From Basidiobolus meristosporus CBS 931.73 (taxonomy: Eukaryota > Fungi > Basidiobolomycota), in NCBI GenBank assembly GCA_002104905.1, contig MCFE01000215.1:62472-126471 (forward strand): a stretch of 64,000 nt of DNA. The letters run 5' to 3'. Both the position numbers and the translations under genes were made by a program. Each line of letters opens with the position of its first letter. Position 1 is the stretch's first letter. A model generated the notes under the pieces. The model made no database searches and had not been told where the DNA came from. It was given only the letters and a program-made list of their open reading frames with translations. This document shows, piece after piece, positions 6,864-64,000 of the stretch.

Positions 6864-6867
6864 AACC

Positions 6868-13786: not shown

Positions 13787-14180
13787 GGTAGCAGAGGAAG
13801 GCGGATGAACTTGCAAGGAATACTGGAATATACTAAACTAGATTGTGGGTTTGTAAAGCCACTAGTATGTCAAGAATACAACTATTGAGCCACAATCCCC
13901 AACTTAAATAAGTTAGCGTCACTTCAGAAGGTACTGGTTTCAATGTCCTTTGATAGAGTATTGTACTAAAGCTTCCAATACTGTAACAACTGTAAACTCC
14001 ACCAGCAGGGTAATAAAGTGAATGCAGCTTTGACCAATAGTTTTACAAAGATAAAGTATCTTTGCCTTTATAGGACAAGACTAGGGAAAGATGATGGGTG
14101 ATACTTATGGTGAGTATTCCTTTTACAAGTTTTCTTCAAACTTTGGGCAGAAGGCAGGGATCCACAGGTAAGTCAGGGGA

Positions 14181-22005: not shown

Positions 22006-25000
22006 CTAAATGTGATGTGCGAAATTCCGGTGCTTGAATAGCTTAAGTCGGTTTCCTGCCACAGGTGCTCTTAGCGGTGTTCCATCAAGTTCAGACAGGT
22101 AGTAGCTTCCATTTCCAATCACCTTAGAGACAATATATGGGCCAGACCACTTATTGTCAAATTTGCGACTCCACTGCTTGTCTAAAGTGGAATCATAGAG
22201 CAGTACTGGATCTCCTTGCAGTAATGGCTTTGGTCTAAGGCTATGTGACTTGTCAAATGGTTCCTTGTTCTGAAGTCTTGTCTCTTTGAGTTTACAGCTG
22301 CTTGGGTAATATCAAGTTCATGGTGATCAAGCTGTTTGATGCGTGTAGTCAGTAGTTCTTCTGTACTCATTGTAGTTCTCCACTCTAGCATGTTCCAGGA
22401 TATTGAGTCAAGCTCTATGGGAAGAACGCAATCATGTCCGTAAAGCAATTTGAATGGAGATAGACCTGTGCTGCGCTTTGTAGTGATTCTATCTGCCCAG
22501 AGTGCTAGATGAAGTTGTGTAGGCCACTGTAGTGTCATGTTGTTGCAGCTCTTGACCAGGGAGTTAACTAACGGGCCATGGCCTCTTTCAACCATTCCAT
22601 TGGCCTGTGGGTGATAAGCGGTAGTGAAAGCAATATGAATCTTGTATTGTGAGCAGAGTTCCTGGATCAAATTTGAAGTCATTTCTCCTCGGTCAGCAAC
22701 AAACTGGCTGATGCAGCCAAATCTGCATATTATATCTTCAAGAATAAATCTCCATATGGTGTGGCTTTTGTTATTGGGTAGGGCTCGAGCTTCTACCCAC
22801 CCACTCAGATCATCTCTGGCAACAACAAGGTACTTCTTGGTTCCAGCAGTTGGCATGTGGACCAGGTCAATGCCAACCTTCTGCCATAGACAAGGTGTGT
22901 AGGTTGGATGGAGCGGCTCCTCATATCTCTTGGTTGACCTTCTTTGGCAAATGTCACAAGATTCAACAAAGTGTTGGACATCATGATACATATGCTCCCA
23001 GTAGTATCTACTGGAAACAACATTGTAAGTGGCATCTCTGCCTCTATGACCACCGGGTCTTCCTTCATGAAGGCTTGACATAATAGTCAGTTGTTCTTGG
23101 GGCTCAACTATAACTCTTCTTGGTGTCTGTCCAGGCTTTACTCGTTTGAAGAGGAGGCCATCTTTTATGTAGAAATGATGGGCCTTCTTCCTGAGCTTTC
23201 TGAAATCATGTGGGCTCATTCCTGGTGGCTTCTCTAAGGTTCTCAGATAGTCTTGAATGGTGTTCCACGTAGAGTTGCTGGGCTTCTTCACGTGTAGTTG
23301 CCGGATTTCTGCATCAATTATGTCATCAAAGTCAGGGTCCATATCTTCAGACAACTGTGGTCCCTTCCTGGAGAGTGCATCAGCCACAACATTTGTCTTG
23401 CCAGGGATATGTCTGACCTCAAAGTCAAACATTTTCAGCCATGCCATCCACCGATTTGTGGCATCATCAGGTAGATCAGGTTTGTTGATCATTCCTATAA
23501 GTGGCTTAGCATCTGTCTCCAGGATGAAATGTGTCATGTAGAGTTGTGACTTCAGCTTTCTCAGCATCTTCACAACTCCTAGTAGCTCTCTCTTAATCTG
23601 TGAGTATCTTTGTTCTCTAGGAGAGAAGAGGCAGCTCTCATATCTGCAGGCATAGCGGTTACCATCTTCATCATCTTGGCCAAGTAGTGCTCCAGCTCCT
23701 ACAGGGCTTGCATCCACCGTCAAGATAGGTGGGCATTCAGTGTTCTGATAGTCAAGAGGTCTCAGAACTGGTGGAGATATTAAGGCCTCTTTTAGTAATT
23801 GCATGGCTTCTTCTTGCTCTTCTCCCCAGTTAAATGGGGCATTCTTTCTCTGTAGTCGGTAGATTGGTTCTGCTATCTCAGAAAATCTTGGGATCCAGAT
23901 CCTAAAGAACCCACAAGCTGCCACAAAGCCACGAGCTTGTGTTAGATTTGTGGGGGTAGGCCAGTTGCATATCTTTTGTGTCTTGGAGTCTCCGGGTGAA
24001 CGGCCAAAGGTGTTGCATTTTTGTCCAACAATGGATATCTCTGATACACCAAAGCTGCTTTTCTCACCACTGATGGTGAGTCCAGCTTCTTCAATGGCTC
24101 CTAATATGGCATCATTGTCTGAAATATGGTCATAGACAAACTTTCTTACTCCAGGCATAACTTCAGTTGTGTCCCGGAGTTTTGGTCCTTTGATGCCTAT
24201 GTCATCAACAAAGACAGCAAGTTTCTCAGGTATAAACCGGTAGAGCACATTTACCATGCACCTCTGGAACTGAGCCACGGAGTTTGTTGCCCCTTGGCTA
24301 AGTCTTGTCATTCTTAACAGTCCAAATGGTGTCTGGAGTGCAAACATATCTCTTGATGTCTCATCTAGGGGAATCTGGTCGTATCCTGAGTAGAGATCAT
24401 ATGTTGAGTAGATGGAGTGACCACTAAAGCTTTCTGCAAAGTCATCAATAGACGGAGGTATTGCGGCATCTCTGATAGTGACGGCATTTGCAGGTTGCAT
24501 GTCTTGAATGAATCGGAGCTTCCCATTCTTCTTTTTGGTCACAAACCATCTGTTAGCATAAGGTCCATGGCAAGGTTCTAGGATACCAGCTTCAATCTTC
24601 TTCTTAAGTAGGTCATGCACATCAGCTTGGAGTCCTCTAGGCAGTGGGTAAGGTTTAAATGACCAGGGTGTGTGGGGCACTGTATGAATTTTGATAGGTT
24701 TTTCAACTGATGTCTTTAAGAGTCCCATCTCCTTGTCATTATATGAGAAAACCTTATCATGCCTTTTCAGGGTTTCTTCAAATAGTAAGATCTCCTCCGG
24801 TGTTAGGTTTCCATCACCAATGATAAGTTGCTTAAGTCTCTCAGGTGTAAGTCGTATATCTTCTGGTGTTCCTTCTGGTGGTCTGATGTAATCAGCAGGT
24901 CGAGACCCATCAGTTAAAGGCGTAAGTGATGGTCTAATCTTCTGTTCCACTGTCTTGTATTTTGTGCGAACCATAGCTGTCTGCTCCTGTATACCTAATG

Positions 25001-26857
25001 AGTAGCTCCAACTGTTAGGGTGTATACTGTCAGGCTCCTCATCTTCTTCTATAACAAGATGTGTCTTCTGGCAAGCGGTATGTGTCCTCTTATTGTTGGG
25101 TGTTACCCCACAAAATGTTGACTGTAGTCCTGGGTTGGATCCTTGTATAGTGTACCACACTGACCCATCAGAATAGTTGGTAGTTGTAGCCTTAGTACTG
25201 GTCTCCCATGGTCTGCCTAACAGAAGGTCAAAGTTTGCCTTCTGGCAGATAAAGAGGGGAAGCCAGACCTTGATTCCTTGTACCTCAATAGGGAACTTGT
25301 GCACTACACCATAGAGTGGGCTAGACCCTGAGTTTGCATCAGTCATGTTCCATCCAATATCTCTATCAACAGGCAGTAGCTCCTTGCTTCTAAGTGTCTT
25401 CCAGAAGTCTAGCGGCATAACACAAATCTCTGAACCACTGTCAATATGGCAGTCAACAGGGTCATCATATATATACCCTTTCACCACAGCAGTTGCAACT
25501 GAGTAAAAGGTCTTGTATTTGGTAGCGGTGTCATCCTTTTTGTGGTCTTCATGGTTTGTCTGGATTATATGGGTGTCCATATGTTCAACAGCTTGTCTTC
25601 TTGTTCTAAGCTGCTCATCAAAGGTCTTCCTAACAGACGGTGATACACTCATGATTTCTCCAACTGACAAAGTGAGGTTCTGCTTCAGTAGTTTCTCAGT
25701 AATCAATTGGGGGCTTGAGTAGCCAGCTATCTTTGAGGTCATCTGAAAGTGAGGTAATGGGTCTTGAGTAGGCAGTGTTCCAGGCCTCTTGTCAATAATA
25801 ACCTCAGGCTCTTCAAATCGTGGTCTTCTAAGGATGGGTTTGACAGGTTCTTCAGGAAGGTGTCTCTTAGTAGCAAAGGTGTCTACTTCGTATTTTCTGT
25901 TGTCAGGGCTGTTTGGACTCACTGTATGAGTCTCAATAGGGGCATCAACAGTAATCTTTCTAGTTGCTGAGTCAGACTTCTGGAAAAGGGCTCTCATTCC
26001 GCCTCTTCGGAAATTAGTGGGAATCCTTTTTCCTTCCTTATCAGCAAGCATTCCATCAGCATCAAACTGTACTGTTCCTTCTCTAAGTAGCTGGCTAAGC
26101 TCTGAGCATTCACGTCTGGCATGCTGAGTAGAGTCACACCAAATGCAGTGTCTAGGCAAAGCTCTTTGGCCCTCAGTAGCTACCTCAGCTGAGCCGTTAA
26201 CCTTGAGGGCTAGCTTTTGTAGCTGTTCAGCAAGTTGGTCAATTCTGTCGGTAGTGTAGGTCTGATTGTCAGCAACAGCACTCTTTAGCTCCTTGGTTGG
26301 CTGGTCTGGCAGATTAGATGTCAAGAGTCTCATAAAGGTAGAAGTTTGCTTTGCCTCTAGGAGTACACGTTTCATCTCTGCAAAGCAAGGAATGCCAGAC
26401 TTGTCATCCTTGGCTGCATGTAGGTCAACTTTCCTTGCCAACTCCTGGGGAAGCCCTTGTGCAAGGTAAAGTGTCATGGTAAACTCAGTTATTGCCTGGG
26501 ACTCTAGGAGTGGCTTGGCCATATCTTCATATTGTTGAATGAACTCTTCAAGTGGTAGCTTGGAGAGTCCCATCCTTCCAAAGTGTCTGAGGTCCTCAAT
26601 TCCATAGTATATCTGGGGTCTGCCATACTCGGTCTGAAGGTAGGTCTTCATTAAGGTCCAGTCAGTCAGAATGTCTCCTTGTCTGAGAAGCTTAGTAGTA
26701 ATATCATCGTGCAGTAGTAGGGGAAGTCTTCAGCCATTTCTTGTTCAGATAGGCTGCACATCTTGCAGAGCTTCTCCCATTTGTATATGAAGCTCTCCAC
26801 ATTCTTTCCATCAAACTGTGGGGCTCCATGTGAGAGTGGTAACGGCATAGAGTTCAT
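22006..26857 (-). CDS. Ty3 gag-pol polyprotein with two 1-bp frameshifts (~26705 and ~22270)
   Basis: CIWCDSTQHARREC knuckle, IDSGS protease, FVDD RT, VDAS RNase H, integrase. Repairing single-base losses joins ORF 26666-26857 to 22182-26651 and extends the C-terminus (KWSGPY) to TAG at 22006. Confidence 0.88.
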
Positions 26858-45211: not shown

Positions 45212-46999
45212 TTACTCGGATTTGTCGGTGATGGGCTTGTAGGTCGGCTCCCACATGCTTTTCTCCACGTATTTCAGCAGCTCCTCCCATGCGGGTGTGC
45301 CCACCTTGCTGGACGAACCGGAGGGCAAGATGGAGAGGATTCTGGGATCCGTGGCGAGGTTCTCCTTGACTGCTTGGCGGCACACCGCGGCTGCTACCAC
45401 CGCGGAGACCTCCCGAATCCGCTCGATTCTGGGGTAAAGAAGGTGTGACTTTCGCTCGTCCTCCGTCAGCGAGTCGGCCAGTGCCGCGGCCGAGGCGTAG
45501 ATGATCGTGTCGGTGATGCGCGAGGGTCTGGAGAGGATGGCTCCGAGGCCAAGTCCTGGGAAGATGTACATGTTGTTGCCTTGGCCGGGGACATGCTCCT
45601 TCTTGTTCTCATCGACGTAGCGTGGGAAGGCAGTGCCTGACGCGAAGAGCACATTTCCATTGGTGTGGATCATGGCCTGTTCAAACGAGCATTCGGCTTG
45701 GGTGGCGGGATTCGAGAGGGGGAACACGATTGGTCTTTCGTTGATGTCCGCCAAGAGCTTCAACACCTCCGCGTCGAACACCCCGCCCTGCGAGCTGAGG
45801 CCGATCAGGGCGGTGGGCTTGACGTATTCGATCGTCTCCTTCAGGTCCTTGAGTTGACGGCCCTCGTTGTCGTCTCTGGCGAAGTACACCTTGTGCTGGG
45901 CAAGCTTGTCCCCTCTGTCCTGGGTCACAAGGCCCTTCGAGTCGTTCAGCCAGAAGAGCTTCTTGGCCTCCTCCTCGGTCATGCCGTGCTCCAGCACGAA
46001 GTAGTCCATGATCTGCTTGGCAACCCCCACCCCTGCCGACCCGGCCCCGAAGAAGAGCAGTCGATGCTGCTTGGCCGGGATCCCGACCTCCCTCACCGCA
46101 TTGATGAACCCGGCGAGGATGACCGCCCCGGTGCCCTGGATGTCGTCGTTGAAGCTGAGGTAGCGGTTGCGGTGACGCTCGAGGAGCTCGAATGCGTGCT
46201 CCGAGGAGAAGTCCTCGAACTGGATCAGCATCTTGGGGAAAGCCTTGTTCAACGTGGCCAGGACCGAGTCGACCGCCTTGTGGAACTCGTCCCCCTCCGG
46301 CCTCTTTCTGCGCAGTCCGAGGTAGAGCGGGTCGTCCAGGTTCTTCTGGTTGTTCGTGCCGAAGTCGAGGCAGATCGGAAGCGTTCTTCTGGGATCGAGG
46401 CCTGCCGCCGCCACGTACAGCTGCAACTTCCCGACTGGGATGCCCATGCCTCCAACCCCCAGATCGCCAAGTCCGAGGATGCGGGATCCGTCGGTGATGA
46501 CGGCAATATCCGGAGTGATGGAAGGGTCGGGGAGGGCGTTCTTGTAGTTCTCGATGAGTTGGTCGAGGACAGGGATGTCATCGATGGAGATGAACAAGCC
46601 GTCGAACGATCCGTTAGGGGCTAAGAATGGATAGATGTGGGAATAATTGGCGCAAGCGGTGCCAACGGTGGGGGTGTAGATGAGTGGCATCAACTCCTCG
46701 GGGGAATCCAGAACCATCCTGTAGAACAGGTTCGAGTTGGTGTTTCTCAGCCAGGCCAAGAAGATGTACTTCTCCAGGCCAGTTGTCTTGCCACGCAGTT
46801 GCTCGAATGCTCTCGATACCTGCTTGCCCATCGTCTCGAGGGCAGGAGGAAGAAGACCTCGCAACTGTCGGCTATCCCGCTCGGTAAGGGATGTGGCCGT
46901 TCCTTTGGCATAGAAGGGAGAGCGGATGTTGTAGGACATCCGTCTGCATTGGGTAGACCTAGCTAGTCGGGTGGATGCTAAACGTAATGCAGTGAACAT
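45212..46999 (-). CDS. Malic enzyme, probably NADP+-dependent, with mitochondrial presequence (595 aa)
   Basis: TDGSRILGLGDLG, QFEDF, FNDDIQGTG, GAGSAG, DSKG, PLSNP, GQGNN motifs. N-terminus MFTALRLASTRLARSTQCRR. Intronless; TATATA at 47061-47066. Confidence 0.93.
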   Translation of the reverse strand: MFTALRLASTRLARSTQCRRMSYNIRSPFYAKGTATSLTERDSRQLRGLLPPALETMGKQVSRAFEQLRGKTTGLEKYIFLAWLRNTNSNLFYRMVLDSPEELMPLIYTPTVGTACANYSHIYPFLAPNGSFDGLFISIDDIPVLDQLIENYKNALPDPSITPDIAVITDGSRILGLGDLGVGGMGIPVGKLQLYVAAAGLDPRRTLPICLDFGTNNQKNLDDPLYLGLRRKRPEGDEFHKAVDSVLATLNKAFPKMLIQFEDFSSEHAFELLERHRNRYLSFNDDIQGTGAVILAGFINAVREVGIPAKQHRLLFFGAGSAGVGVAKQIMDYFVLEHGMTEEEAKKLFWLNDSKGLVTQDRGDKLAQHKVYFARDDNEGRQLKDLKETIEYVKPTALIGLSSQGGVFDAEVLKLLADINERPIVFPLSNPATQAECSFEQAMIHTNGNVLFASGTAFPRYVDENKKEHVPGQGNNMYIFPGLGLGAILSRPSRITDTIIYASAAALADSLTEDERKSHLLYPRIERIREVSAVVAAAVCRQAVKENLATDPRILSILPSGSSSKVGTPAWEELLKYVEKSMWEPTYKPITDKSE

Positions 47000-51026: not shown

Positions 51027-52751
51027 ATGCCCAACATCCGATCCTCTTTCTTATCCCAAGGAACCGCCACCAATGAATCCGACCGGGATGCGTTCAAGCT
51101 ACGTGGCCTGATGCCTTCCGTGGTGGAGTCCATGGAGAAGCAAGTTGCTCGTGCCTTCGAGCAGCTTCGTAGCAAGCCCACCGACTTGGAAAAGTACATC
51201 TTCCTCGCCTGGATGAGAAACACCAACACCCGGCTCTTCTACAAGATGATCCTGAGCTCCCCTGCTGAGCTGATGCCACTCATCTACACCCCCACCGTGG
51301 GCGCTGCCTGTGTCAACTACTCTCACATCTATCCATTCCTCGCTCCCAATGGAACCTTTGACGGGCTGTTCATCTCCATCGATGACATCCCTGTCCTCGA
51401 CCAGATCCTTGAGAACTACAAGAGCGCCCTCCCCGACTCCTCCTTAACACCTGATATCTCGGTCATCACCGACGGATCCCGCATCCTCGGACTTGGCGAT
51501 CTCGGGGTTGGAGGCATGGGCATCCCAGTCGGGAAGTTGCAGCTGTACGTGGCGGCGGCAGGCCTCGATCCCAGAAGAACGCTTCCGATCTGCCTCGACT
51601 TCGGCACGAACAACCAGAAGAACCTGGACGACCCGCTCTACCTCGGACTGCGCAGAAAGAGGCCGGAGGGGGACGAGTTCCACAAGGCGGTCGACTCGGT
51701 CCTGGCCACGTTGAACAAGGCTTTCCCCAAGATGCTGATCCAGTTCGAGGACTTCTCCTCGGAGCACGCATTCGAGCTCCTCGAGCGTCACCGCAACCGC
51801 TACCTCAGCTTCAACGACGACATCCAGGGCACCGGGGCGGTCATCCTCGCCGGGTTCATCAATGCGGTGAGGGAGGTCGGGATCCCGGCCAAGCAGCATC
51901 GACTGCTCTTCTTCGGGGCCGGGTCGGCAGGGGTGGGGGTTGCCAAGCAGATCATGGACTACTTCGTGCTGGAGCACGGCATGACCGAGGAGGAGGCCAA
52001 GAAGCTCTTCTGGCTGAACGACTCGAAGGGCCTTGTGACCCAGGACAGAGGGGACAAGCTTGCCCAGCACAAGGTGTACTTCGCCAGAGACGACAACGAG
52101 GGCCGTCAACTCAAGGACCTGAAGGAGACGATCGAATACGTCAAGCCCACCGCCCTGATCGGCCTCAGCTCGCAGGGCGGGGTGTTCGACGCGGAGGTGT
52201 TGAAGCTCTTGGCGGACATCAACGAAAGACCAATCGTGTTCCCCCTCTCGAATCCCGCCACCCAAGCCGAATGCTCGTTTGAACAGGCCATGATCCACAC
52301 CAAGGGCAAGGTGCTCTTCGCATCAGGCACTGCCTTCCCAAGTTACATTGATGAGAACAAGAAGGAGCATGTCCCCGGCCAAGGCAACAACATGTACATC
52401 TTCCCAGGACTCGGCCTCGGAGCCATCCTCTCCAGACCCTCACGCATCACCGACACGATCATCTACGCCTCGGCCGCGGCACTGGCCGACTCGCTGACGG
52501 AGGACGAGCGAAAGTCACACCTTCTTTACCCCAGAATCGAGCGGATTCGGGAGGTTTCTGCGGTGGTAGCAGCCGCGGTGTGCCGCCAAGCAGTCAAGGA
52601 GAATCTCGCCACAGATACAGAAATCCTTTCCATTCTCCCAGTCAATGCGTCAACGGAAGTAGGCACACCAGTATGGGAAGAGCTGATCCAACATGTGAAG
52701 ATGAACATGTGGGAGCCGGTTTACGAATCGGAGATCGCCAGCAAGATGTAA
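51027..52751 (+). CDS. Malic enzyme, probably NADP+-dependent, cytosolic (574 aa)
   Basis: Same signature motifs. No upstream in-frame ATG before the TGA at 50964, so no presequence. Intronless. Confidence 0.95.
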   Translation: MPNIRSSFLSQGTATNESDRDAFKLRGLMPSVVESMEKQVARAFEQLRSKPTDLEKYIFLAWMRNTNTRLFYKMILSSPAELMPLIYTPTVGAACVNYSHIYPFLAPNGTFDGLFISIDDIPVLDQILENYKSALPDSSLTPDISVITDGSRILGLGDLGVGGMGIPVGKLQLYVAAAGLDPRRTLPICLDFGTNNQKNLDDPLYLGLRRKRPEGDEFHKAVDSVLATLNKAFPKMLIQFEDFSSEHAFELLERHRNRYLSFNDDIQGTGAVILAGFINAVREVGIPAKQHRLLFFGAGSAGVGVAKQIMDYFVLEHGMTEEEAKKLFWLNDSKGLVTQDRGDKLAQHKVYFARDDNEGRQLKDLKETIEYVKPTALIGLSSQGGVFDAEVLKLLADINERPIVFPLSNPATQAECSFEQAMIHTKGKVLFASGTAFPSYIDENKKEHVPGQGNNMYIFPGLGLGAILSRPSRITDTIIYASAAALADSLTEDERKSHLLYPRIERIREVSAVVAAAVCRQAVKENLATDTEILSILPVNASTEVGTPVWEELIQHVKMNMWEPVYESEIASKM

Positions 52752-53799: not shown

Positions 53800-55567
53800 A
53801 CCCTGTTGCAAGAGTTTTGGAGATATGAAAAGTGACTGGGAGAGCAAGCAGATTATGTGGCTTTCGCTTTATGGTTTGTTGAATATGGAAGTAGTATCTT
53901 TAAATTTGCATAATCCTGATATCAAAAACATAAAATTTGCCTGGGAAAGTGTCAAGAATTGCTGTGCAAAGATTGCAACTCTGTGGAAAACTTGAAGTAT
54001 TTCCACAAAATATCCAGTACCCAAACATGAAAAATTTCCCAGTAGCTCAAAATAAAATCTAATCAGGTATCTGGCCAGAGTTATGTAGAGATTTTAAGCT
54101 AAGATTTAAGTTGCCAACTTCACAGAATATCATGGGTAATTACCCTACCTACAATACTCCCGCTCAAATCAATACCATTCTAACTGTTGTAAGAGCTTTC
54201 AAGATACTGCTAGTGATTGGTAGAACAAATTGATTAGGTGGTTTTCACTCAATGATTTATTGAATGTAAAAGTGGTATTTATACTCTTGCATGATCTTGG
54301 CAAGAGAAGCACATAGAGTATGTCTTGAAAGGTCTTTAGGGCATGTGTGCCAAGTTTTGGGCAGTTTGGACTGTTTTGAGAATATGTATATACTGGGTAA
54401 CTGACTTTTTGGTGAAAATATGAGAAGAAATCCAGACAAGGAGCATGGTTGGTATTCTCTAAGATTTGTAGGTAATGATGTAAGTGACTAGTCAGGCAAA
54501 TACTTAGGTGGAATTACAGATTCCACAATACTCCCATGCAACTAAATATCCATATTAGTTAATCTTAATGTGATCTAAGATATTGAAGTTTGTCTCTAGC
54601 AAATGGTTTTATGAATATGTGTGCAATCATTTCATATGTAAGCAGTAAATCAAGCTGATTTATTTTCATAGCTTCATATATGAAATTGTATTAGATATAC
54701 ATGTGCTTAGTTCTTGCATGAAAAGTCAAATCTCTACCTAATCTTATACATTTTTGATTTTCTTGAAATGATGCAGTAGATGCTTTTTGACATGATCTAA
54801 AGTATGTAAAAGGCTTTCTTAGCAACATTACTTTTTTCTAGCTTCACAGGCTGCCACATACTCTGCCTCTGCAATGGAAAGCACTTTGACTGGCTGCTTT
54901 CTTGAATTCTATGATACTCATGCTTTGCAGTAAAGAAAGGTTTATCCCATGGTAGATCTTTTTTTTGAGTTTTTTCCCCAATAAGCATCAGGATATCCCA
55001 CAAGATCTTCTTCTGAATCATTTTAGGTGTACCTTAAGCCAATAACAACAGTTCCTCTTAGGTATCTAAAAGTTGGCTTAATGCTGCAATATGATCAGAT
55101 TCATATTTCTAATTATGCTGGCTGGCAACTCCCACAGGATAAGAGAAATCTGGACATGTTCCAAGCATATCTGATTCAGACTGCCAGGTATAAATTGGTA
55201 AGGGAACTCTGGGCCTTCAGAAGATACCCAGCTCTCTTGATTTGGCTGAATTTTGACCAAGCTAAGGTTTGTCTCCATTACAGTAGCTGCCAGTTTACAG
55301 TCTTTTATTTGGCACATCTTAAATATATCATTGATATACTTGCACCGGCTTAGGATGACAGCATGGGTACCTCTTTCTATGGAAAATGCTATCCATAGGC
55401 AGTATTTGAACTTCCCCAGATTGGATATTTTGAGCTGCTTAGATAGGCTGGATTTAGTCTCTATCAATGTTTATTAGTTATTGGTGCCTATATTGATATC
55501 CTTCACATAAGTATATAATAGTGCCAGATTTTCACCATCCAATGTATAGCATATACTATAGTCAGGC
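53800..55567 (-). mobile_element. Degenerate copia (LTR remnants, RNase H, part of RT), cut off at 55567
   Basis: Similar to copia B 2533-3930. The sequence stops after ATATACTATAGTCAG, where the telomeric array starts. Confidence 0.8.
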
Positions 55568-55676
55568 TTAGGGGAGGGAAAGTCCCCAAGGTAGGTGAAA
55601 TCTTTATTTGATTTCAGACAAGTCTAACTACAAATAAAGAAGCCAGCTGGGAAAAGTAGATTCCCAAAGTAAACAT
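55568..55676 (-). mobile_element. Telomeric array unit A: 109-bp 3' terminus of a retroelement
   Basis: TTAGGGG junction, degenerate hairpin, GGTGAAATCTTTATTT and AAAGAAGCCA motifs; closest to unit C. Confidence 0.75.
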
Positions 55677-56146
55677 TTAGGGTAGGGGGGGGGAGACAGT
55701 CACCAATAGGTGAAATCTTTATTTCAGTTGAAACAAAGAAGCCAGCGCTACTGTTGTAGCTTTGATACAAGAGTGTGTAGCTGAGGGGAATTTGTAGGTA
55801 AGTTAATAAGAAGTGATGATAGTTCTTCAGTGCTCAAGACACTGTTCAGTGGGAAGGGGGGTAGCAAGAGAGGTAAGAATGACTTGTGAACAACATTAAT
55901 GAGGGGAATGTGATAAGGATTGATATTCATCAGAAAGGGAGTGTGCTGCTGCAGATATTGCTGCCAAAGGTCTGTCAAGTACTTCAGGTAGGCCAGCTTG
56001 GGTTTTTCTGACTGCAGAATATAGTGGGCAAACTTCTTGACTTCAGGATCTCCAAGTATAGTTCTCCAGCAGGAGTCAGGTGTTGTATGGTGTGTTCTCT
56101 TCCAGGCCTTAATCAGTGGGTTGTTGCAGTTGTGAAGTCTGAGGTA
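55677..56146 (-). mobile_element. Unit B: 5'-truncated copy of LINE subfamily 1
   Basis: Only a handful of substitutions versus 59184-59649; encodes the ORF2 C-terminus. Confidence 0.92.
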
Positions 56147-57055
56147 GGGGAGGGAAAGTCACCGAGTTGGTGAAATCTTTATTTGAGTTAAGAACTAATC
56201 TAAGTACAAATAAAGAAGCCAATTCAGAGGTCTAGAACCTCTCTAATAAGTAATCTAATTTATGTTTTGTTTCATCTCTAATATTTTTTTTAATAAAGTA
56301 AAGCTCATTAGGGGTAAATATAAAATTCAGGGGTTTTGGGGGAAGTACAAATTGTAGATGTTTCTGATCAATATAATCCAAGACTGGAACCCAGCCTGGG
56401 ATTAGGTGCAGTAGGAAAGGTGTATGGACTTGTAAGTAGCTCTGCCACATAGATCTTAGATGGTCCTGAGCCAGTAGTCTTGGTTTCTCAGCTTTTTGAA
56501 GTTTTGAAGCAAGCTCTGTTACTACAGCAGAGCCAACCAGGGTGTGCCAGCAAGAAGATTTCAGGGAGGAGTTAGATTGAAGCCATTGTTTGATGGAGGG
56601 GTTATGTGATTTCTGAAGTTTGACTAGGAAGGAAGCACGGAGATAGATCATTCGGATTTGGTATGGGTAGAACCCAAAGGCTCCATTAGTTGCATGGATA
56701 TAGGGAGATACTGGAGATAAGGTACCAAGGATCTGATACACTGATGGAGAAATTTATCCAGGCGGTGAAGTTCTCTGGAGGTTAGGGGTATAATGTGGAG
56801 ACCAAATTGAAGTACTGGCAGCACATACTGCTTCAGAAGTATAGGGATCTTTTGAATTGGAGTGTCTGGAGTGACTACTACCGGAAGCTTTTTGAGAGCC
56901 TGTTGGGCAAGATGGATCCTATTATTCAGGTGGAGCTTGGAGTCAATCCCATGTTGACAAAACAGCAGACCTAGATATATTGCAGTTTGTTGTGGCAGAA
57001 TGCTAGTGTTCTGTATAGTTGTAGTGCATCCTATTGGGACTGTCTTGGAAATTGA
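56143..57055 (-). mobile_element. Unit C: 5'-truncated copy of diverged LINE subfamily 2
   Basis: IYLG...LKQYVLPVLQFG...LDKF, then after a frameshift near 56710 GAFGFYPYQIR...HTPF, colinear with ORF2; same 3' module. Confidence 0.88.
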
Positions 57056-57555
57056 GGGTAGGGGGGAGGAAAGTCACCAAGTGGTGAAATCTTTATTTAC
57101 TTATGACAAGTATCTAAAGAAGCCAAGTTAATCTGAAGTAATTCCTAGAAAGCTAGGTCTGAGAGTTGACAAGCTGAGTGGTACTATATTTCCTAGTTAG
57201 CTAGGTCTGAGAGAGGTTTCCTGGAAAGCCAGGCCTGAGAAGTGAGAATCTGAATATATCTGAGCTAAGTTATACTGGTTTGCGGTAGCTGGATTGTGGC
57301 CGGAATGGCCAGTAGACTGGGGGAGCTGAGATGAATTTCTGGGCGATCACTGGCCAAATTTACTAGGCAAATCTGGCCATTAGCATTTCAAGGATTTCAG
57401 CCAATCAGAGCCTTTACTTTGCCCGATGGTTGATCAAGCCATCTCCCAATGAGCACACATCAATTTATTAATCAAATTTTGCTGGATCCAGGATTTGAAC
57501 CCACAACCATGGGTATGGAAGGGTTAGGGATAACCACAAGGCTAAGTGTTCTTGG
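57056..57555 (-). mobile_element. SINE unit 1 (tRNA-derived head, LINE-type 3' module)
   Basis: A box TAGCCTTGTGG (57534-57544), B box GGTTCAAATCC (57491-57501), non-coding body with no T4 on the transcribed strand. Confidence 0.82.
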
Positions 57556-58004
57556 TTAGGGGGAGGAAAGTCACCAAGTGGTGAAATCTTTATTTACTTA
57601 TGACAAGTATCTAAAGAAGCCAAGTTAATCTGAAGTTATTCCTAGAAAGCTAGGTCTGAGAGATATCTTCCTGGTAAGCCAGGTCTGAGAGTTGAGAAGC
57701 TGATTGGTACTACATTTCCTAGTTAGCTAGGTCTGAGAGAGGTTTCCTGGAAAGCCAGGTCTGGGAAGTGAGAATCTGAATATATCTGAGCTAAGTTATA
57801 CTGGTTTGCGGTAGCTGAATTGTGGCCAGAATGGCCAGTAGACTGGGGGAACTGAGATGAATTTCTGGGCGATCACTGGCCAAATTTACTAGGCAAATCT
57901 AGCCAATTAGCATTTCAAGGATTTCAGCCAATCAGAGCCTTTACTTTGCCCGATGGTTGATCAAGCCATCTCCCAATGAGCACACATCAATTTATTAATC
58001 AAAT
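57556..58004 (-). mobile_element. SINE unit 2, lacking the tRNA head
   Basis: Near-identical body; ends at ATCAAAT and is followed by TTAGGGTTAGGG. Confidence 0.82.
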
Positions 58005-58538
58005 TTAGGGTTAGGGGGGAGGAAAGTCACCAAGTGGTGAAATCTTTATTTACTTATGACAAGTATTTAAAGAAGCCAAGTTAATCTGAAGTTATTCCTA
58101 GAAAGCTAGGTCTGAGATATATCTTCCTGGTAAGCCAGGTCTGAGAGTTGAGAAGCTGAGTGGTACTATATTTCCTAGTTAGCTAGGTCTGAGAGAGGTT
58201 TCCTGGAAAGCCAGGCCTGAGAAGTGAGAATCTGAATATATCTGAGCTAAGTTATACTGGTTTGCGGTAGCTGAATTGTGGCCGGAATGGCCAGTAGACT
58301 GGGGGAACTGAGATGAATTTCTGGGCGATCACTGGCCAAATTTACTAGGCAAATCTGGCCAATTAGCATTTCAAGGATTTCAGCCAATCAGAGCCTTTAC
58401 TTTGCCCGATGGTTGATCAAGCCATCTCCCAATGAGCACACATCAATTTATTGATCAAATTTTGCTGGATCCAGGATTTGAACCCACAACCATGGGTATG
58501 GAAGGGTTAGGGATAACCACAAGGCTAAGTGTTCTTGG
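58005..58538 (-). mobile_element. SINE unit 3, full length
   Basis: A box 58517-58527, B box 58474-58484, four hairpin modules, 3' module. Confidence 0.82.
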
Positions 58539-59183
58539 TTAGGGGGGATGATAATCACCACAGGGTGAAATCTTTATTTAAATTGTAAATAAAGAAGCCA
58601 AGTTTGAATATGAATATCTGAGATAAAATAAGCCTACAAGATAAACTTGGACTTTGCTGTATCCCAGATATCCTCAATATCAAAGTTTAGAGGAGAATGT
58701 AGCAAAACTGCTTGTTCACTGTAGTATTTCTTGAGGAAGTTTGTGACTTGAAGGGAAGGAGAGTTTTTCAACAAGCTGGTAAACCTTTTGAGGAGTTCTT
58801 TTTCCAGAGAGAATGGTACAAAGAGTGGAATGTCTAAATGATGTCTGAATATATGCTCTGAGAGCTCCCAATCCAGCATATTTTTGACTTCCTCTGTAAA
58901 ATCTTCCACAATATCTTTGTCAAGAATGACTTCCAAGAGATCCCTGGCAATGTACTGAATGTTAATAATCTTGGGCATATGAATACCTAGGTCCTTGAGG
59001 TAGTTTCTTTGTTCTGAAATTGGAAGATAGCCAGCATTTCTGAAATAGCAAACAGCCCAATTGGCAGTGGGAGGAGTATCAGGGCTGACAGGGAATCTTC
59101 TTCTGGCTTTAGGGTGCACTGGCTTAGGTGGCTGTCTTATTGGGAGAACAGTGGACTTTGGATGAGCTTGAAGTGCTTGGGAA
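58539..59183 (-). mobile_element. Gag-only retroelement, 5'-truncated
   Basis: ORF1 homologue stops at 58634 and is followed within ~90 nt by the shared 3' module and TTAGGGGGG. Confidence 0.8.
58634..59183 (-). CDS. ORF1/Gag-like protein C-terminal fragment
   Basis: W.V.Y...PIS..R..LK...I...I.N......LEVILD..I...F...V...L.W aligns with LINE ORF1 (25/69 identical by eye). Confidence 0.8.
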
Positions 59184-59250
59184 GGGTTAGGGGGGGAGAC
59201 AGTCACCAACAGGTGAAATCTTTATTTCAGTTGAAACAAAGAAGCCAGCG

Positions 59251-60843
59251 CTACTGTTGTAGCTTTGATACAAGAGTGTGTAGCTGAGGGGAATTTGTAG
59301 GTAAGTTAATAAGAAGTGATGATAGTTCTTCAGTGCTCAAGACACTGTTCAGTGGGAAGGGGGGTAGCAAGAGAGGTAAGAATGACTTGTGAACAACATT
59401 AATGAGGGGAATGTGATAAGGATTGATATTCATCATAAAGGGAGTGTGCTGCTGCAGATATTGCTGCCAAAGGTCTGTCAAGTACTTCAGGTAGGCCAGC
59501 TTGGGTTTTTCTGACTGCAGAATATAGTGAGCAAACTTCTTGACTTCAGGATCTCCAAGTATAGTTCTCCAGCAGGAGCCAGGTGTTGTGTGGTGTGTTC
59601 TCTTCCAGGCCTTAATCAGTGGGTTGTTGCAGTTGTGAAGTCTGAGGTATAATCTGGTTCTAAGGTAGAGAAGTCTGATCTTATAGGGCATAAACCCAAA
59701 AGCACCAAGAATAGCATGTCTGTAGGGGCATTCAGGCAAATGAGGCACCAAGGAGGTAATGCACCATACTGCAAACTTGTCAAGCTTAGTGCAGTCTCTA
59801 GAAGTAAGAGAGAGAAGTGGTAAGCCAAATTCCAGGACAGGGAAGACAAACTGCTTGAGTAGAAGGAGGCAGCTGGGAGCTGAAGTTGTAGGAGGAGTAA
59901 CAGCCAGTAGCTTGTGGAGTGCCTGTCTTGCTAGGATAATTCTCTTCTTCAGGTGTGCTCCAGAGTCTAGTCCAGTAGGCAGGAAAGGAAAGCCAAGATA
60001 TGTAGCAGAAACCTGAGCAGGTAGAGTGGAGTTCTCCAAGTTGATGGGAGAGCCCAAAGGTACTGTCTTTGCAATGGAAAGCTGGAGATTATTCTTCTGC
60101 AGATACTGGTGGATGGTCTGGGAGTCTTGTTGCACATTGGAGGAGGATATTCTGATGTCATCAGCAAAGAGAGTAACCAGGCAGTCAGCTGAGAGTCTTG
60201 GGAAATCATTCAGGAAGATGGCAAACAGTATAGGACCAAGCACAGAGCCTTGAACCACTCCATTAGGAACTGAGAACACAGCTGATTGCTCACTTGGGTG
60301 CAGAATTCTTGCTTGTGGATCCAGAAACAGAGACCTGACAAGGAGGGTGAGAGAGGTACTGGAGAAGCATTGCAACTTGGACCAAAGCAGATTTCTGTCA
60401 ACTGAATCAAAGGCCTTGGTAATATCAAACAGAACAGAGGGATACTTGCACTGGAGAGAGTGATCTTGGCTAAGTATGACTGCATATTCCAAGGAGAGGC
60501 CAGGAACAAAGCCAAACTGTGCAGGATGAAACTTGAGGGAGTCAGAGTAGAGCTCCTGAGCAAGCAGAAGCTCAAACACCTTTCTGCAGGTGGGCAGCAG
60601 AGATATTGGCCTGTAGGAGCTAGGATCCAGGTGCTTTCCTTTACCCTTGTACAGTGGCAGAACATTTGCAAAGGACCATTCCTCAGGAGTAGAAAGCTGG
60701 GCTGAGCATTGCTGAAACAGTGGAAGCAGAAGTGCAGACATGGCCTTGGTACTAGTCTTCAGAAGCTCATAAGAGATTGTGTCCACACCTGGAGCAGTAG
60801 AGTTGGGAAGCCTCTTGAGCACATTATGGATTCTCCTTTGATC
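59251..60843 (-). CDS. ORF2 reverse transcriptase part
   Basis: TAPGVD.I, YRPISLL, QFGF, DITKAFDSV, GVVQGSVLGPILF, LFADD, YLG. Frame open from 60966; no RNase H or CCHC seen. Confidence 0.93.
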   Translation of the reverse strand, partial: DQRRIHNVLKRLPNSTAPGVDTISYELLKTSTKAMSALLLPLFQQCSAQLSTPEEWSFANVLPLYKGKGKHLDPSSYRPISLLPTCRKVFELLLAQELYSDSLKFHPAQFGFVPGLSLEYAVILSQDHSLQCKYPSVLFDITKAFDSVDRNLLWSKLQCFSSTSLTLLVRSLFLDPQARILHPSEQSAVFSVPNGVVQGSVLGPILFAIFLNDFPRLSADCLVTLFADDIRISSSNVQQDSQTIHQYLQKNNLQLSIAKTVPLGSPINLENSTLPAQVSATYLGFPFLPTGLDSGAHLKKRIILARQALHKLLAVTPPTTSAPSCLLLLKQFVFPVLEFGLPLLSLTSRDCTKLDKFAVWCITSLVPHLPECPYRHAILGAFGFMPYKIRLLYLRTRLYLRLHNCNNPLIKAWKRTHHTTPGSCWRTILGDPEVKKFAHYILQSEKPKLAYLKYLTDLWQQYLQQHTPFMMNINPYHIPLINVVHKSFLPLLLPPFPLNSVLSTEELSSLLINLPTNSPQLHTLVSKLQQ

Positions 60844-62020
60844 AAGTGCAAGTGGGATGGGCAGAAGTCTTGAAGTCAGGATGAAAGCCAGGAGTTGAGT
60901 ACTGCTTTGTAGAGAAGAAGATGTTAGCCAGCTGTTCTGTTGAAGGTAACTTCCTGGAAGAGGGCCTCATTGCCCTGTAGAGTCTTGATACTGTTCTTGT
61001 TATAGAGTTGGAAGATTGCAGAGGCAAGGAACTCATAATATGATCCCAGAGCTGAGTATGCAGAGTGTGGTGAATTGCCTTGGAGTGGTGTATTGCTGTC
61101 AGGAGGAGTTTCTCTGTTTTTGGGTTAGGGAAGCTCAGGTAGCTTTGTTGCAGGGCTGAAACAATGGATTCCCATTTTCTTGAGGTAACAGCAGTAGTCT
61201 TGCATGGCAGTGAGAGGGAGGCAGACACCAGAATCAGATGCTTCACAAAGAGCCAGGCAAAGTTGAGATCATCTGGCAGAGAAAGTAGCAAACTGGCAAG
61301 CTTCAAGTAGTTCCCAAAGTCATTCTTCTGATTCTTGGTAGCTTTGTGGGTGAGCACAGTAAGTTTTGGCAGCTTCTTCTTCACAACTGGTTGCATAGAA
61401 AGGGACCAGGCTGGGTGGTCAGAGGCTCTCAAGGATCCTAGCTCAGCTCCAGAGAATTGCTTAACTTCATTCACAAAGTAGAGGGCAGCAGCAGAAGGGC
61501 AGATCCAGTCAACACATCTTTTCTCAGATTGAGCACCTAGTGCTAGCAGGTGGCTTTCTCTCAGGAAGTTCAGTAGGAATGTAGACCTTGGCTTCATTCT
61601 TGCAGTCAGAGTAGTCTTGTTCTCAGGATGGGGAATGTTGAGATCTCCAAGCAAGATAACAGGTGTTGATATAGATTGTTGGTATTGCTGAACCTTCTGG
61701 CATATAACTTGCACTTCCTGAAGGGCTAGACTTGGAGGCAGATAGCAGAGCACCAGACTGATAGTTGGCAACTGGAGAGCAGCACAGTAAGGGGAGTAAA
61801 GAGGAACACAGAGCTGAGGAGTATTGATGGTAGAAGAGATGAAGCAGATAGAGGAGGTATTCTTTGTTCTAGGAGTAGAAAAGCAATATAGATTAGTCAA
61901 AAGTATAGAGGGTAGCTGGACATCAATCAAACACAGGAGGGAAAATCTTGACAGAAGTCTCTCTAGAGTTGGTCTTGATGGCTGTATGCTGTTGCAGTTA
62001 AGCAACAGAACTTCAGGTAG
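60842..62020 (-). CDS. ORF2 APE/EEP endonuclease part
   Basis: LNCNS, YLPP, ILLGDLN, VDWI, SDH. No ATG before the catalytic residues; begins right after the in-frame ORF1 TGA. Confidence 0.85.
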   Translation of the reverse strand, partial: LPEVLLLNCNSIQPSRPTLERLLSRFSLLCLIDVQLPSILLTNLYCFSTPRTKNTSSICFISSTINTPQLCVPLYSPYCAALQLPTISLVLCYLPPSLALQEVQVICQKVQQYQQSISTPVILLGDLNIPHPENKTTLTARMKPRSTFLLNFLRESHLLALGAQSEKRCVDWICPSAAALYFVNEVKQFSGAELGSLRASDHPAWSLSMQPVVKKKLPKLTVLTHKATKNQKNDFGNYLKLASLLLSLPDDLNFAWLFVKHLILVSASLSLPCKTTAVTSRKWESIVSALQQSYLSFPNPKTEKLLLTAIHHSKAIHHTLHTQLWDHIMSSLPLQSSNSITRTVSRLYRAMRPSSRKLPSTEQLANIFFSTKQYSTPGFHPDFKTSAHPTCT

Positions 62021-63529
62021 TCAGGCAGAGGTTGTAGCTTCTTCAGAGGCAGCATTAACAATGTGACCTGCAGAGTCCCAGAGCTCTTCAAATGGTGCAT
62101 CACTTAAGTCAGCAAGGAGGGAAATGGCATGGTTCTTGAGGAAGTATGCCACATCATAGGAGGGGGCTTGTCTCTTGATGGCAGCAAAGAAAGACAGAAT
62201 GGCAACATGGGCTGGAGGCTTGTTGAACAGTAGAGAGTCAGAGGATTCAGATTCTTCAGGCACTATCTTGAAGTCAGTTTTCAGCCAGTTAAGGTTCTTC
62301 TCCACAAAGGCAACAAATGGGTCAGCAATGTTTTGGTCTAGGATAACCTCCAGAATCTTCCCTTTTCTCCAGGCCAGGTTGACAATTCTTGAGAGCTGAA
62401 TATTGCATGCCTTGAGTGCTTTCCTGATGTTGGAAATGGGGGTCCAGGGAACTTGCTTCAAGTACACCACAGTCCAGGTAGAAGCTGGTGGTAGGTTTGC
62501 TGGGGGCTTGTAAGTCCTTCTGTGTTGCAATGGAGCTGCAGTAGTCAGATTGGAGTCCACATTCTCAGTAGAAGGTTTTCTTGATGTGTCTTGCTGAATA
62601 GTACTGGAGCTGGATGTGCTGATAATTCTTGCTAGAACCTTGCCTGCATAAGTCTGAGGTATAGCTGAGGTGACTGTAGAGGTGGTGGCAGCTGGTGCAG
62701 GTGGAGAGGCAGAGACTGAAGCAGGAACTGAGGTCACCTGGGAGAAGGCAGTAGAAGCAGGTTTTCTGGGAGGAACAGAGTTCACTATCCAGTTGTTCTG
62801 TAAAACACTGGAGTAGCTTTTCTGTGGAACAGGATCTTGCTCTTGAACAGGAACAGAAGCAGGAGGCTGGGGCTGAGCAGTAGTGGTAAGGCAGTGGCAC
62901 TCCAAGGAAGCTTTTTGCAAGGCATCTCTGGCAGTTTTCAGGGCAGTATTGGCTTCATTCTTGAGCTTCTTGCATTGGGCATCCAGTCTCTTGTTTTCAA
63001 TAGCCAGGGCAGTATTGGCAGCCTCTAAATCAGCAATTCTCTTCTCAATTGCAAGGAATCTCTGAAGAAATGCATCAGTAGAAGTGCTGGCATCTGGGAG
63101 AGCAGTGGCAGGAATAGAGTCCATTGACAGTGGGCTTCTTGGAGGCAAGGAAAGTGGACTGGCAGATTCAGGCACAAAAGGAGATATCCTGGCAGGAGGA
63201 GAAGGAGTATCCAAGGCAGTAACAGAGGCAATTCTTGTTGGTGAAGCAGCAGCAGGGGAGGCAAGCCTGTTCAGAAACTGGGCAGGAGAGAGTGCTTGAG
63301 GAGAGGGAGTCTTCAGCTTGCCAAGCATGTCTTCCATCAGAGTGATACCAATATTCCTGGTGCATTTGCAGAGAAAAGTAAGCTTCCTGAGTCTGCCAGC
63401 TCTTCCATTCCTTCTGATAGTTCCTTTGTTTCCACAGTTGGGGCAAGAAATCTTCTTGACAGACTTGTCAAAGCAATCAAGAACCTTCCTTTCAGGTGTA
63501 GTGGGCTCCTGTTGAGGTTTTGGTGGCAT
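62021..63529 (-). CDS. ORF1 Gag-like protein (502 aa)
   Basis: First ATG at 63529 (MPPKP). CPNC...CKC zinc ribbon, coiled coil, Pro/Ser-rich linkers and a conserved C-terminal domain. Confidence 0.88.
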   Translation of the reverse strand: MPPKPQQEPTTPERKVLDCFDKSVKKISCPNCGNKGTIRRNGRAGRLRKLTFLCKCTRNIGITLMEDMLGKLKTPSPQALSPAQFLNRLASPAAASPTRIASVTALDTPSPPARISPFVPESASPLSLPPRSPLSMDSIPATALPDASTSTDAFLQRFLAIEKRIADLEAANTALAIENKRLDAQCKKLKNEANTALKTARDALQKASLECHCLTTTAQPQPPASVPVQEQDPVPQKSYSSVLQNNWIVNSVPPRKPASTAFSQVTSVPASVSASPPAPAATTSTVTSAIPQTYAGKVLARIISTSSSSTIQQDTSRKPSTENVDSNLTTAAPLQHRRTYKPPANLPPASTWTVVYLKQVPWTPISNIRKALKACNIQLSRIVNLAWRKGKILEVILDQNIADPFVAFVEKNLNWLKTDFKIVPEESESSDSLLFNKPPAHVAILSFFAAIKRQAPSYDVAYFLKNHAISLLADLSDAPFEELWDSAGHIVNAASEEATTSA

Positions 63530-63598
63530 ATCCAGAGTTTCAGCTTCAAATTTCAATTTTTGAGATTTTTGGGTGATTTTTGATGGGCGGGATCAAAA

Positions 63599-63612
63599 TT
63601 AGGGTTAGGGTT
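63599..63612 (+). repeat. Telomeric repeat (TTAGGG)2TT
   Basis: Directly visible. Confidence 0.9.
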
Positions 63613-63654
63613 GCGCGCTGTGACTGCTTTTTACGATCGCAAGGTCAGATCCTA

Positions 63655-63856
63655 GGAAAAAATAAAAATAGTTAGTAAAGGTGATTTAATGGATGGATGG
63701 ATGGATTCGGAGTCAGATTCAATCAAAAAATCAAATCGTTGACTAATTTAAAGAGGGAAAAAATAAAAATAGTTAGTAAAGGTGATTTAATGGATGGATG
63801 GATGGATTCGGAGTCAGATTCAATCAAAAAATCAAATCGTTGACTAATTTAAAGAG
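63655..63856. repeat. 101-bp exact tandem duplication containing a GGAT microsatellite
   Basis: 63655-63755 equals 63756-63856. Confidence 0.92.
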
Positions 63857-64000
63857 GGGTTAGGGGGGGAGACAGTCACCAACAGGTGAAATCTTTATTT
63901 CAGTTGAAACAAAGAAGCCAGCGCTACTGTTGTAGCTTTGATACAAGAGTGTGTAGCTGAGGGGAATTTGTAGGTAAGTTAATAAGAAGTGATGATAGTT
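63857..64000 (-). mobile_element. 3' end of the next LINE subfamily 1 copy; runs off the window
   Basis: Matches 59184-59327. Confidence 0.92.

Follow-up and report, generated by a model that had tools for sequence, protein, structure and literature searches.

The last 8.4 kb of contig MCFE01000215.1 (126,471 bp; assembly GCA_002104905.1) of the fungus Basidiobolus meristosporus CBS 931.73, corresponding to positions 55568-64000 of the 64,000-nt stretch analysed here (the window), very probably are the inner portion of an array at a chromosome end that a community of telomere-specialised non-long-terminal-repeat (non-LTR) retrotransposons has built. Its members are long and short interspersed nuclear elements (LINEs and SINEs) and gag-only elements. 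The anatomy of this array and of its counterparts on other contig ends comprises a terminal site, one polarity, 5′ truncation, tails complementary to the G-rich telomere strand (the G-strand), a shared 3′ module, an enzyme that joins an apurinic/apyrimidinic endonuclease (APE)-type domain to a reverse transcriptase (RT), and canonical telomere caps.

Nine units at one contig end and their counterparts on five others

Between 55568 and 64000, nine units follow one another head to tail, all of them on the minus strand (sequence read from 55000 to 64000; units mapped by BLAST against element copies from other contig ends; Table 1). The initial annotation, made from the letters alone, had proposed just such an array in a fungus; all nine of its junction coordinates were reproduced within 1-3 nt, and its description of the junctions agrees with what is seen in the sequence, namely at most two TTAGGG units at each, several units truncated at the 5′ end, and neither poly(A) nor a detectable target-site duplication (TSD) at any of the nine units. 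The four element types that it recognised, two LINE families (LINE1 and LINE2), a gag-only element (GAGa) and a SINE, are real, but their count has to be raised to five, because the 108-bp innermost stub represents a second gag-only family (GAGb). When the element references were used as BLAST queries, none of these families was found in positions 1-55563 of the window.

On the inner side of the array, the CCCCTAA tail of the GAGb stub abuts a 5′-truncated Copia-like remnant directly (the junction at 55568). An open reading frame (ORF) in this flank (55078-55467) looks Copia-pol-like by eye and is related, at 74% DNA identity, to the flank of the array in locus L004 (L numbers denote our loci), where an RVT_2 ORF is present (L004 17028-17594). 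On the outer side, the array reaches window base 64000, which is base 126471 of the record and the contig end. Two telomere units, TTAGGGTTAGGG at 58005-58016, adjoin the truncated SINE at 57554-58003. Over positions 54000-64000, the array has a GC skew of about +0.24 on the telomere G-strand, and a strand bias of this kind has been reported for telomeric retrotransposons (PMC10088271). The other retroelements of the window have a GC skew of the same sign that is weaker.

The same families occur at five more contig ends, those of MCFE01000244.1, MCFE01000090.1, MCFE01000243.1, MCFE01001166.1 and MCFE01000877.1. When the elements were followed beyond the window, the contig-end clustering and the uniform polarity that the initial annotation had foreseen were both found: each of the ~45 units on the six ends has its 5′ end pointing outward, the elements are confined to the last 9-25 kb of their contigs, and no copy lies outside the terminal stretches, the interior parts of the loci included, in the ~150 kb examined. 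Two of these ends are capped. MCFE01001166.1 terminates in ~30 perfect CCCTAA units fused to a LINE1 that is truncated within ORF1, and MCFE01000243.1 in 33 CCCTAA units seated on a 45-bp LINE1 stub, from which ~25 kb with 15 further units extend inward. Since these perfect telomere tracts of 180-198 bp sit directly on 5′-truncated LINE1 copies at two sister ends, arrays of this kind are truly terminal; and since even a 45-bp LINE stub received such a cap, telomerase-type synthesis is evidently active. As originally proposed, the chromosome end therefore lies to the right of the window: the G-strand is the plus strand, the array stands at the contig end, and the capped sister arrays have the predicted polarity. 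The LINE1 copies are 94-100% identical and have at least 14 different 5′ truncation points, which indicates that additions were repeated, independent and recent. Arrays of this kind also explain the contig breaks at the chromosome ends of the B. meristosporus assembly.

Table 1. Units of the array in the window, from innermost to outermost, and a representative 3′ module
Feature	Position	Strand	Length	Remarks
GAGb 3′ stub	55568-55675	-	108 bp	Innermost unit; 96% identity to the GAGb 3′ end of L003
LINE1 3′ fragment	55676-56141	-	466 bp	5′-truncated; 98.9% identity to LINE1 reference 3950-4409
LINE2 3′ fragment	56142-57054	-	913 bp	5′-truncated; codes for the C-terminal part of ORF2; 97.6% identity to the LINE2 of L003
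SINE	57055-57553	-	499 bp	Full length; tRNA-like head; pol III box A/B-like motifs at 57491-57544
SINE	57554-58003	-	450 bp	5′-truncated; 97.8% identity to SINE reference 75-528
SINE	58004-58536	-	533 bp	Full length; box A/B-like motifs at 58474-58527
GAGa	58537-59182	-	646 bp	Gag-only; 5′-truncated; ORF 58634-59209
LINE1	59183-63856	-	4.67 kb	Full length
LINE1 3′ stub	63857-64000	-	144 bp	Outermost visible unit, cut by the contig end; 100% identity to the LINE1 3′ end
Representative 3′ module	59197-59262	-		CUUCUUU box pairing with AAAUAAAG, UCACC-loop-GGUGA hairpin, C-run; present in all nine units

The 3′ module and the element families

All nine units of the window terminate in a 3′ module of ~70 nt, a C-run and 0-2 telomere repeats. 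The 16-mer core of the module, GGTGAAATCTTTATTT, has nine copies, all on the plus strand and within 55594-63900, and none elsewhere in the window, whereas 0.07 matches would be expected from shuffled sequence; with the core so oriented, the elements themselves lie on the minus strand. Read on the element strand, each unit ends in a CTTCTTT box, AAATAAAG, a hairpin (TCACC, 4-6 nt, GGTGA), 4-10 C and 3-10 nt of TAACCC-type sequence. On the plus strand, a G-run and 3-10 nt of TTAGGG-like sequence, no more than two units, accordingly precede each module, and the next unit abuts immediately. RNAalifold predicts two stems, one between the CUUCUUU box and AAAUAAAG and the other being the UCACC/GGUGA hairpin, with a few compensatory changes; the loop between the box and AAAUAAAG is free in both length and sequence. 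All five families of the window, LINE1, LINE2, GAGa, GAGb and the SINE, have this structured module. Its core was also sought metagenome-wide, which returned three matches, all of them unrelated chance matches without tails.

The full-length LINE1 of the window is composed of a leader (63611-63856, including a 103-bp tandem duplication), ORF1 (62021-63532), an in-frame TGA and ORF2 (59251-62020), which encodes the APE followed by the RT. An embedded CCCTAACCCTAA at 63599-63610 separates the leader from the body, and both full-length LINE1 copies begin with a leader of ~115-245 nt followed by this repeat (window 63599-63856; L012 reverse strand 2700-2826); the leader of a related LINE in L006 is similar but lacks the embedded repeat. 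By analogy with the 5′ tags of HeT-A, leader and repeat may be the relic of a co-mobilised upstream unit. The TTAGGGTTAGGG at 63599-63610 was also considered as a tenth junction and rejected, because the layout of leader, repeat and body recurs in the second full-length LINE1 (L012), which has a different upstream neighbour.

In the ORF1 protein of LINE1 (503 aa), an N-terminal Cys-rich motif and a coiled coil are followed by a C-terminal domain with a predicted fold of beta-alpha-beta-beta-alpha plus helices (predicted local distance difference test, pLDDT, 80); this domain resembles an RNA-recognition motif (RRM), its best fold match, at most weakly (E = 0.03). ORF1 and ORF2 share one frame with a single TGA between them, and ORF2 has no ATG, an arrangement that is kept in three lineages (62021-62023; L005 2669-2671; L010 1449-1451) and, as a layout, suggests stop-codon readthrough or reinitiation. 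In the window copy, ORF2 is disrupted by one extra T at 60866; an intact ORF2 of 917 aa is found in a sister LINE1 copy in L013. The RT of the window copy matches Pfam RVT_1 (E = 1e-25), the best solved-structure match is human L1 ORF2p, and outside the genus no database protein exceeds 35% identity. The APE region, i.e. the N-terminal 210 residues of ORF2, gave weak, sub-threshold Exo_endo_phos matches in Pfam and no match in a sequence search against PDB chains; its AlphaFold model (pLDDT 81) adopts the fold of an APE-type endonuclease, with Foldseek matches to APE1, ExoA and L1-EN (E ~5e-10), and the endonuclease motifs N, D, Y, D-N, D and S-D-H are kept across lineages, with Asp in place of the usual Glu. 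No Pfam match to a restriction-enzyme-like (REL-type) endonuclease was obtained.

In ORF2, LINE2 and LINE1 are 49% identical. The third autonomous family, LINE3, was encountered on the other contig ends only; its RT is 27% identical to the LINE1 RT, it has an APE-like ORF of its own, and its 3′ end is a different one that runs straight into CCTAACCC. A LINE3-like relative is represented by its 3′ end in a shorter unit, unit C. The autonomous elements are APE-type LINEs of two deeply diverged clades. As mapped, the LINE3 reference unit measures 11.5 kb, of which the first ~4.65 kb are a repeated segment of uncertain membership. This segment is repeated in tandem with no telomere junction between the copies (L004 241-4888, and 4889 onward), and a diverged extra copy lies on another end (L013 reverse strand 3172-6793); its small ORFs (186 and 100 aa) match no known family. 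Directly proximal to the LINE3 3′ end on MCFE01000877.1 lie seven copies of an 86-bp tandem repeat (L014 reverse strand 10790-11316).

In both gag-only families, the protein aligns with the C-terminal 150 residues of LINE1 ORF1 and ends at the same point, the GAGa ORF being 29% identical to the ORF1 C-terminal domain (BLASTP, E = 1e-17). Between the GAGa ORF and the module there is a 3′ untranslated region (UTR) of ~55 nt, and a gag-only copy of ~1 kb in L012 has an ATG, a coiled coil and the ORF1-type C-terminal domain, with no RT. Box A and box B motifs at tRNA-like spacing were found only at the heads of the two full-length SINEs, with 0 matches in shuffles; ARAGORN and Rfam detected no tRNA or cloverleaf in the SINE head. 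A further 466-bp non-coding element, unit B, has its own 3′ end abutting CCCTAACCC (L002 11029-11494, L003 6614-7067, L004 13116-13319) and an internal inverted telomere-like motif; it may represent another non-autonomous family.

Related elements are not restricted to this strain. LINEs with an ORF2 63-80% identical to those described here are present in Basidiobolus-like contigs of other samples (Logan assemblies of several sequencing runs and one ENA assembly), and an ORF1 homologue is annotated in Basidiobolus ranarum. The LINEs of the other samples retain module and tail, and further units follow them head to tail with the same junction grammar. Between lineages, synonymous sites are saturated (pS ~0.76) and the ratio of non-synonymous to synonymous change (dN/dS) is 0.1-0.25, values that indicate purifying selection on the LINE ORFs; a 25-nt module core is identical between lineages despite this saturation. 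The LINE3-type tail is kept in a relative at 55% identity. Two Smittium loci with relatives of LINE3 have A/T-rich ends without telomere repeats and are not telomeric, which means that telomere targeting is not general in the LINE3 clade.

Growth of the arrays and competing explanations

How might such arrays grow? From the anatomy described above, we infer priming by the end of the G-strand, mobilisation in trans via the module and re-capping by telomerase. In place of poly(A), the RNAs of these elements would carry a terminal C-run and CCCUAA-type repeats, preceded in LINE1, LINE2, the gag-only families and the SINE by the two-stem module. The C-rich RNA tail would base-pair with the 3′ end of the G-rich telomere strand, and the RT, recruited by the module, would copy the RNA outward from the 3′-OH of that strand in what would amount to target-primed reverse transcription at a chromosome end; each new copy would consequently come to lie outside the one before it, its 3′ end facing the chromosome interior and its 5′ end the terminus. 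Incomplete copying or later erosion would lead to frequent 5′ truncation, telomerase-type synthesis would re-cap the new end with TTAGGG repeats, and the gag-only elements and the SINE, bearing the same module, would be mobilised in trans. That chromosome ends are extended partly by retrotransposition, as the initial annotation had put it, is well supported as far as this anatomy goes; its stronger wording, that they are mainly extended in this way, is not supported, given that canonical caps are present.

Within this scheme, we favour additions mostly at critically short or eroded ends, with the natural 3′ end serving as the primer rather than a nick within a long tract, and this is the least secure of its sub-points. 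It is favoured because interstitial tracts comprise only 0-3 repeats (once 5-6), compared with the 30-33 repeats of the terminal caps, and because some junctions are free of repeats altogether, the C-run being fused directly to a truncated element (L003 ~7899; window 56141-56143).

The main rival, which we regard as unlikely though worth serious attention, is endonuclease-dependent, site-specific insertion into double-stranded telomere repeats in the style of TRAS/SART or MoTeR/FoTeR, whereby the APE would nick the G-strand within a tract and the tail would anneal there. Uniform polarity is equally predicted by it, and it is favoured by the APE fold with its catalytic motifs, which purifying selection has kept across lineages, and by the telomere-repeat register at the 3′ junction, which is constant within each family (every family ends in CCCTAA-type units), as expected from sequence-specific cleavage. 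Random nicks in a long tract should, however, leave many long proximal tracts, at variance with the short interstitial ones just described; nor does nicking within a tract accord well with the junctions that lack a telomere unit, or with terminal tracts that directly cap 5′-truncated elements.

Considerably less probable is that subtelomeric recombination, unequal crossing-over or break-induced replication was the main builder of the arrays and retrotransposition the source of a few founding copies. A tandem pair of 499-bp LINE1 fragments with identical truncation points and junctions on MCFE01000244.1 indicates that recombination also shapes the arrays; several ends have LINE3 and its flanking pieces in common (98-99% identity), one LINE3 position recurs as the breakpoint of contigs, and the Cnl1 arrays of Cryptococcus are described to expand and contract partly by recombination (bioRxiv 10.1101/2021.08.11.455996). 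Against recombination as the main builder stand the order of units and the truncation points, which vary between ends (at least 14 distinct LINE1 5′ ends), the element's own tail plus telomere units at every junction, the repeat-free ones noted above apart, and ORFs that are under purifying selection and include an intact ORF2. Barely credible, finally, and largely refuted is that LINEs and SINEs of the ordinary dispersed kind have simply accumulated in gene-poor subtelomeres, or that the assembly is at fault: the window is indeed very rich in transposons (Copia, two Ty3/Gypsy, DDE transposase) and four of the six contigs stop inside repeats, but there are no copies outside the terminal stretches in the ~150 kb examined, polarity is 100% uniform, telomere-repeat tails replace poly(A) and TSDs are missing, the same junction grammar recurs in independent assemblies of other samples, and two ends have telomere caps.

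A community of retrotransposons that adds to chromosome ends by G-strand priming remains the preferred reading, and several observations weigh against it. The contig of the window stops inside a LINE1 stub, so that this particular array cannot be traced to a telomere, and the sample comprises only six contig ends, reached via annotated proteins (for the other five, LINE1 RT homologues and proteins on neighbouring elements). The tandem pair on MCFE01000244.1 belongs here as well. Microhomology at the junctions, a potential signature of annealing-primed addition, averages 0.6 nt versus 0.4 by chance, which is no distinguishable difference and is confounded by single-nucleotide polymorphisms near the 5′ ends, and the junction repeats themselves could, as far as sequence tells, derive from the chromosome and not from the RNA template. 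Furthermore, the endonuclease is conserved under selection even though pure end-priming would not need it; the Drosophila elements TART and TAHRE likewise retain their endonuclease.

All these features can be combined in one joint reading, which we put forward tentatively and rate somewhat below an even chance: Basidiobolus would represent a convergent, telomerase-positive counterpart of the Drosophila telomere, in which a co-adapted guild forms the terminal 10-25 kb, comprising four or more lineages of APE-LINEs that belong to two clades, a pair of gag-only families and a SINE that may be the first telomere-specific one; the guild adds copies by pairing of the C-run/CCCUAA tail with the G-overhang, preferentially at critically short tracts, and thereby provides back-up end-healing beside telomerase. 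If this were true, the guild would be an evolutionary intermediate between telomerase-only and retrotransposon-only telomeres.

Relation to known telomeric elements, and neighbouring sequence

The arrays resemble those of HeT-A, TART and TAHRE in Drosophila, elements of the Jockey clade, in that they are terminal and head to tail, have the 3′ ends of their units facing the centromere and 5′ truncations of variable extent, combine autonomous LINEs with a gag-only partner, include a full-length element with 5′ sequence that may be upstream-derived, and have their G-rich strand on the telomere G-strand. By contrast, Drosophila telomeres are devoid of telomerase repeats and their elements end in oligo(A), whereas Basidiobolus has perfect TTAGGG caps, short interstitial repeats and a C-run/CCCTAA tail. 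The comparison with Drosophila made at the outset therefore holds for architecture and polarity and fails for the absence of telomerase repeats and the oligo(A) tails. We know of no SINE partner in Drosophila telomeres. With TRAS and SART of Bombyx and Tribolium, which are LINEs of the R1 clade, the Basidiobolus elements have in common an APE and an RT in ORF2, specificity for telomere repeats and a host that retains such repeats; TRAS and SART, however, sit at defined positions within long tracts and carry poly(A), while the Basidiobolus units stack 0-3 repeats apart without it. For SART1, a passage of PMC4700185 cites the structure of the 3′ UTR as important for initiation.

Among fungi, MoTeR of Magnaporthe, FoTeR of Fusarium and Cnl1 of Cryptococcus are non-LTR elements confined to chromosome ends, with a few CCCTAA units after their 3′ ends; Cnl1 forms arrays of 5-80 kb with 5′-truncated copies and in some strains occupies nearly all chromosome ends (PMC12857005; bioRxiv 10.1101/2021.08.11.455996). 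All three fall into one clade with CRE, SLACS and CZAR and have a REL-type endonuclease (PMC12857005). The Basidiobolus elements are like them in their end-confined location, in the CCCTAA-type repeats after the 3′ end and in the 5′-truncated copies. They differ from these single-ORF, CRE-like elements in that the LINEs have an N-terminal APE and two ORFs, and in that the set adds a shared structured 3′ module, gag-only partners and a SINE.

Athena and Coprina, endonuclease-deficient Penelope-like elements (PLEs), are present in fungi and elsewhere. Their RNAs have reverse-complement telomere repeats at the 3′ end, by means of which they attach to exposed G-rich overhangs (PMC8557442). The Basidiobolus elements likewise have reverse-complement telomere repeats at their 3′ end, here read from DNA only, and it is the same mechanism that we favour for them; nevertheless, the RT of PLEs is related to TERT, has no endonuclease and is accompanied by hammerhead motifs, whereas the Basidiobolus RT is LINE-type (RVT_1) with an APE. 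No hammerhead was detected in the window, nor did any Rfam family reach threshold there. In stringent LINE-SINE pairs such as UnaL2/UnaSINE1 of the eel, a LINE and a tRNA-derived SINE share a structured 3′ tail with short tandem repeats instead of poly(A), from which it follows that the RT recognises the tail. The conserved, structured 3′ tail that the Basidiobolus LINEs share with their non-autonomous companions is comparable, except that pairs of the UnaL2/UnaSINE1 type insert genome-wide, while here the terminal repeat is the telomere complement and every copy encountered was located at a chromosome end.

Other, independent cases of telomere-associated LINEs in hosts that have telomerase are Zepp of Chlorella, GilM and GilT of Giardia and Tx1-1_ACar of the anole (PMC10088271). 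They belong to other hosts and clades, and tail-sharing gag-only or SINE partners were not found reported for them. Telomeric LINEs of the APE type are known from insects, Chlorella and a lizard (PMC10088271); in the literature, we found no report of such LINEs in fungi, nor a paper on telomeric elements of Basidiobolus or Zoopagomycota. The multi-component set of APE-LINEs is thus apparently undescribed. The initial annotation knew of no description of its four-component set in fungi, and our search agrees with this; its reading has to be corrected in that fungal telomeric retrotransposon arrays as such had already been published as MoTeR, FoTeR and Cnl1.

Conflict and cooperation between hosts and transposons have a textbook example in telomere-specialised retrotransposons, and well-studied multi-family telomeric communities are, to our knowledge, essentially limited to Drosophila and the silkworm. 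Basidiobolus adds an independent multi-family community, and this in an early-diverging fungus that has retained canonical telomeres, with APE-type LINEs where all fungal telomeric non-LTR elements described so far have a REL-type endonuclease, and with gag-only partners in the manner of HeT-A and a SINE, which have one structured 3′ tail in common. How do an RNA tail and a 3′ stem-loop steer reverse transcription to a chromosome end? Is the endonuclease necessary, and do such elements heal short telomeres? The system is well suited to asking these questions.

Elsewhere in the window, there are a Copia element, a fragment of a DDE transposase, two Ty3/Gypsy elements and two malic-enzyme genes in inverted arrangement. 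Three LTR retrotransposons appear intact (Copia, 2892-6911; Ty3 with a chromodomain, 9333-13816; Gypsy with DUF4100, 22182-26651) and, like the array, all lie on the minus strand. Giant genes of the non-ribosomal peptide synthetase (NRPS) type lie at most a few kb from the inner edge of two other arrays (L002 17790 onward; L004 21314 onward); one of the two encodes 8158 aa, and the other has Condensation, AMP-binding, PP-binding and Thioesterase domains. On MCFE01000090.1, five tandem genes for CHAP-domain proteins (PF05257) of 181-231 aa lie directly inside the terminal array (L003 10790-18266). The CHAP domain is typically that of a bacterial or phage cell-wall amidase, and the five genes were possibly acquired horizontally and amplified in the subtelomere. 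Since the arrays adjoin NRPS genes and possibly horizontally acquired ones, subtelomeric dynamics may affect the evolution of these genes. The two malic-enzyme genes of the window (45245-46866 and 51097-52718) are intronless and form an inverted duplication with arms of 1622 nt that are 92% complementary, situated in an island of 55% GC within DNA of 38-45% GC. Their proteins are 90% identical; a long central stretch shows no difference at all and, at the level of sequence comparison, suggests gene conversion.

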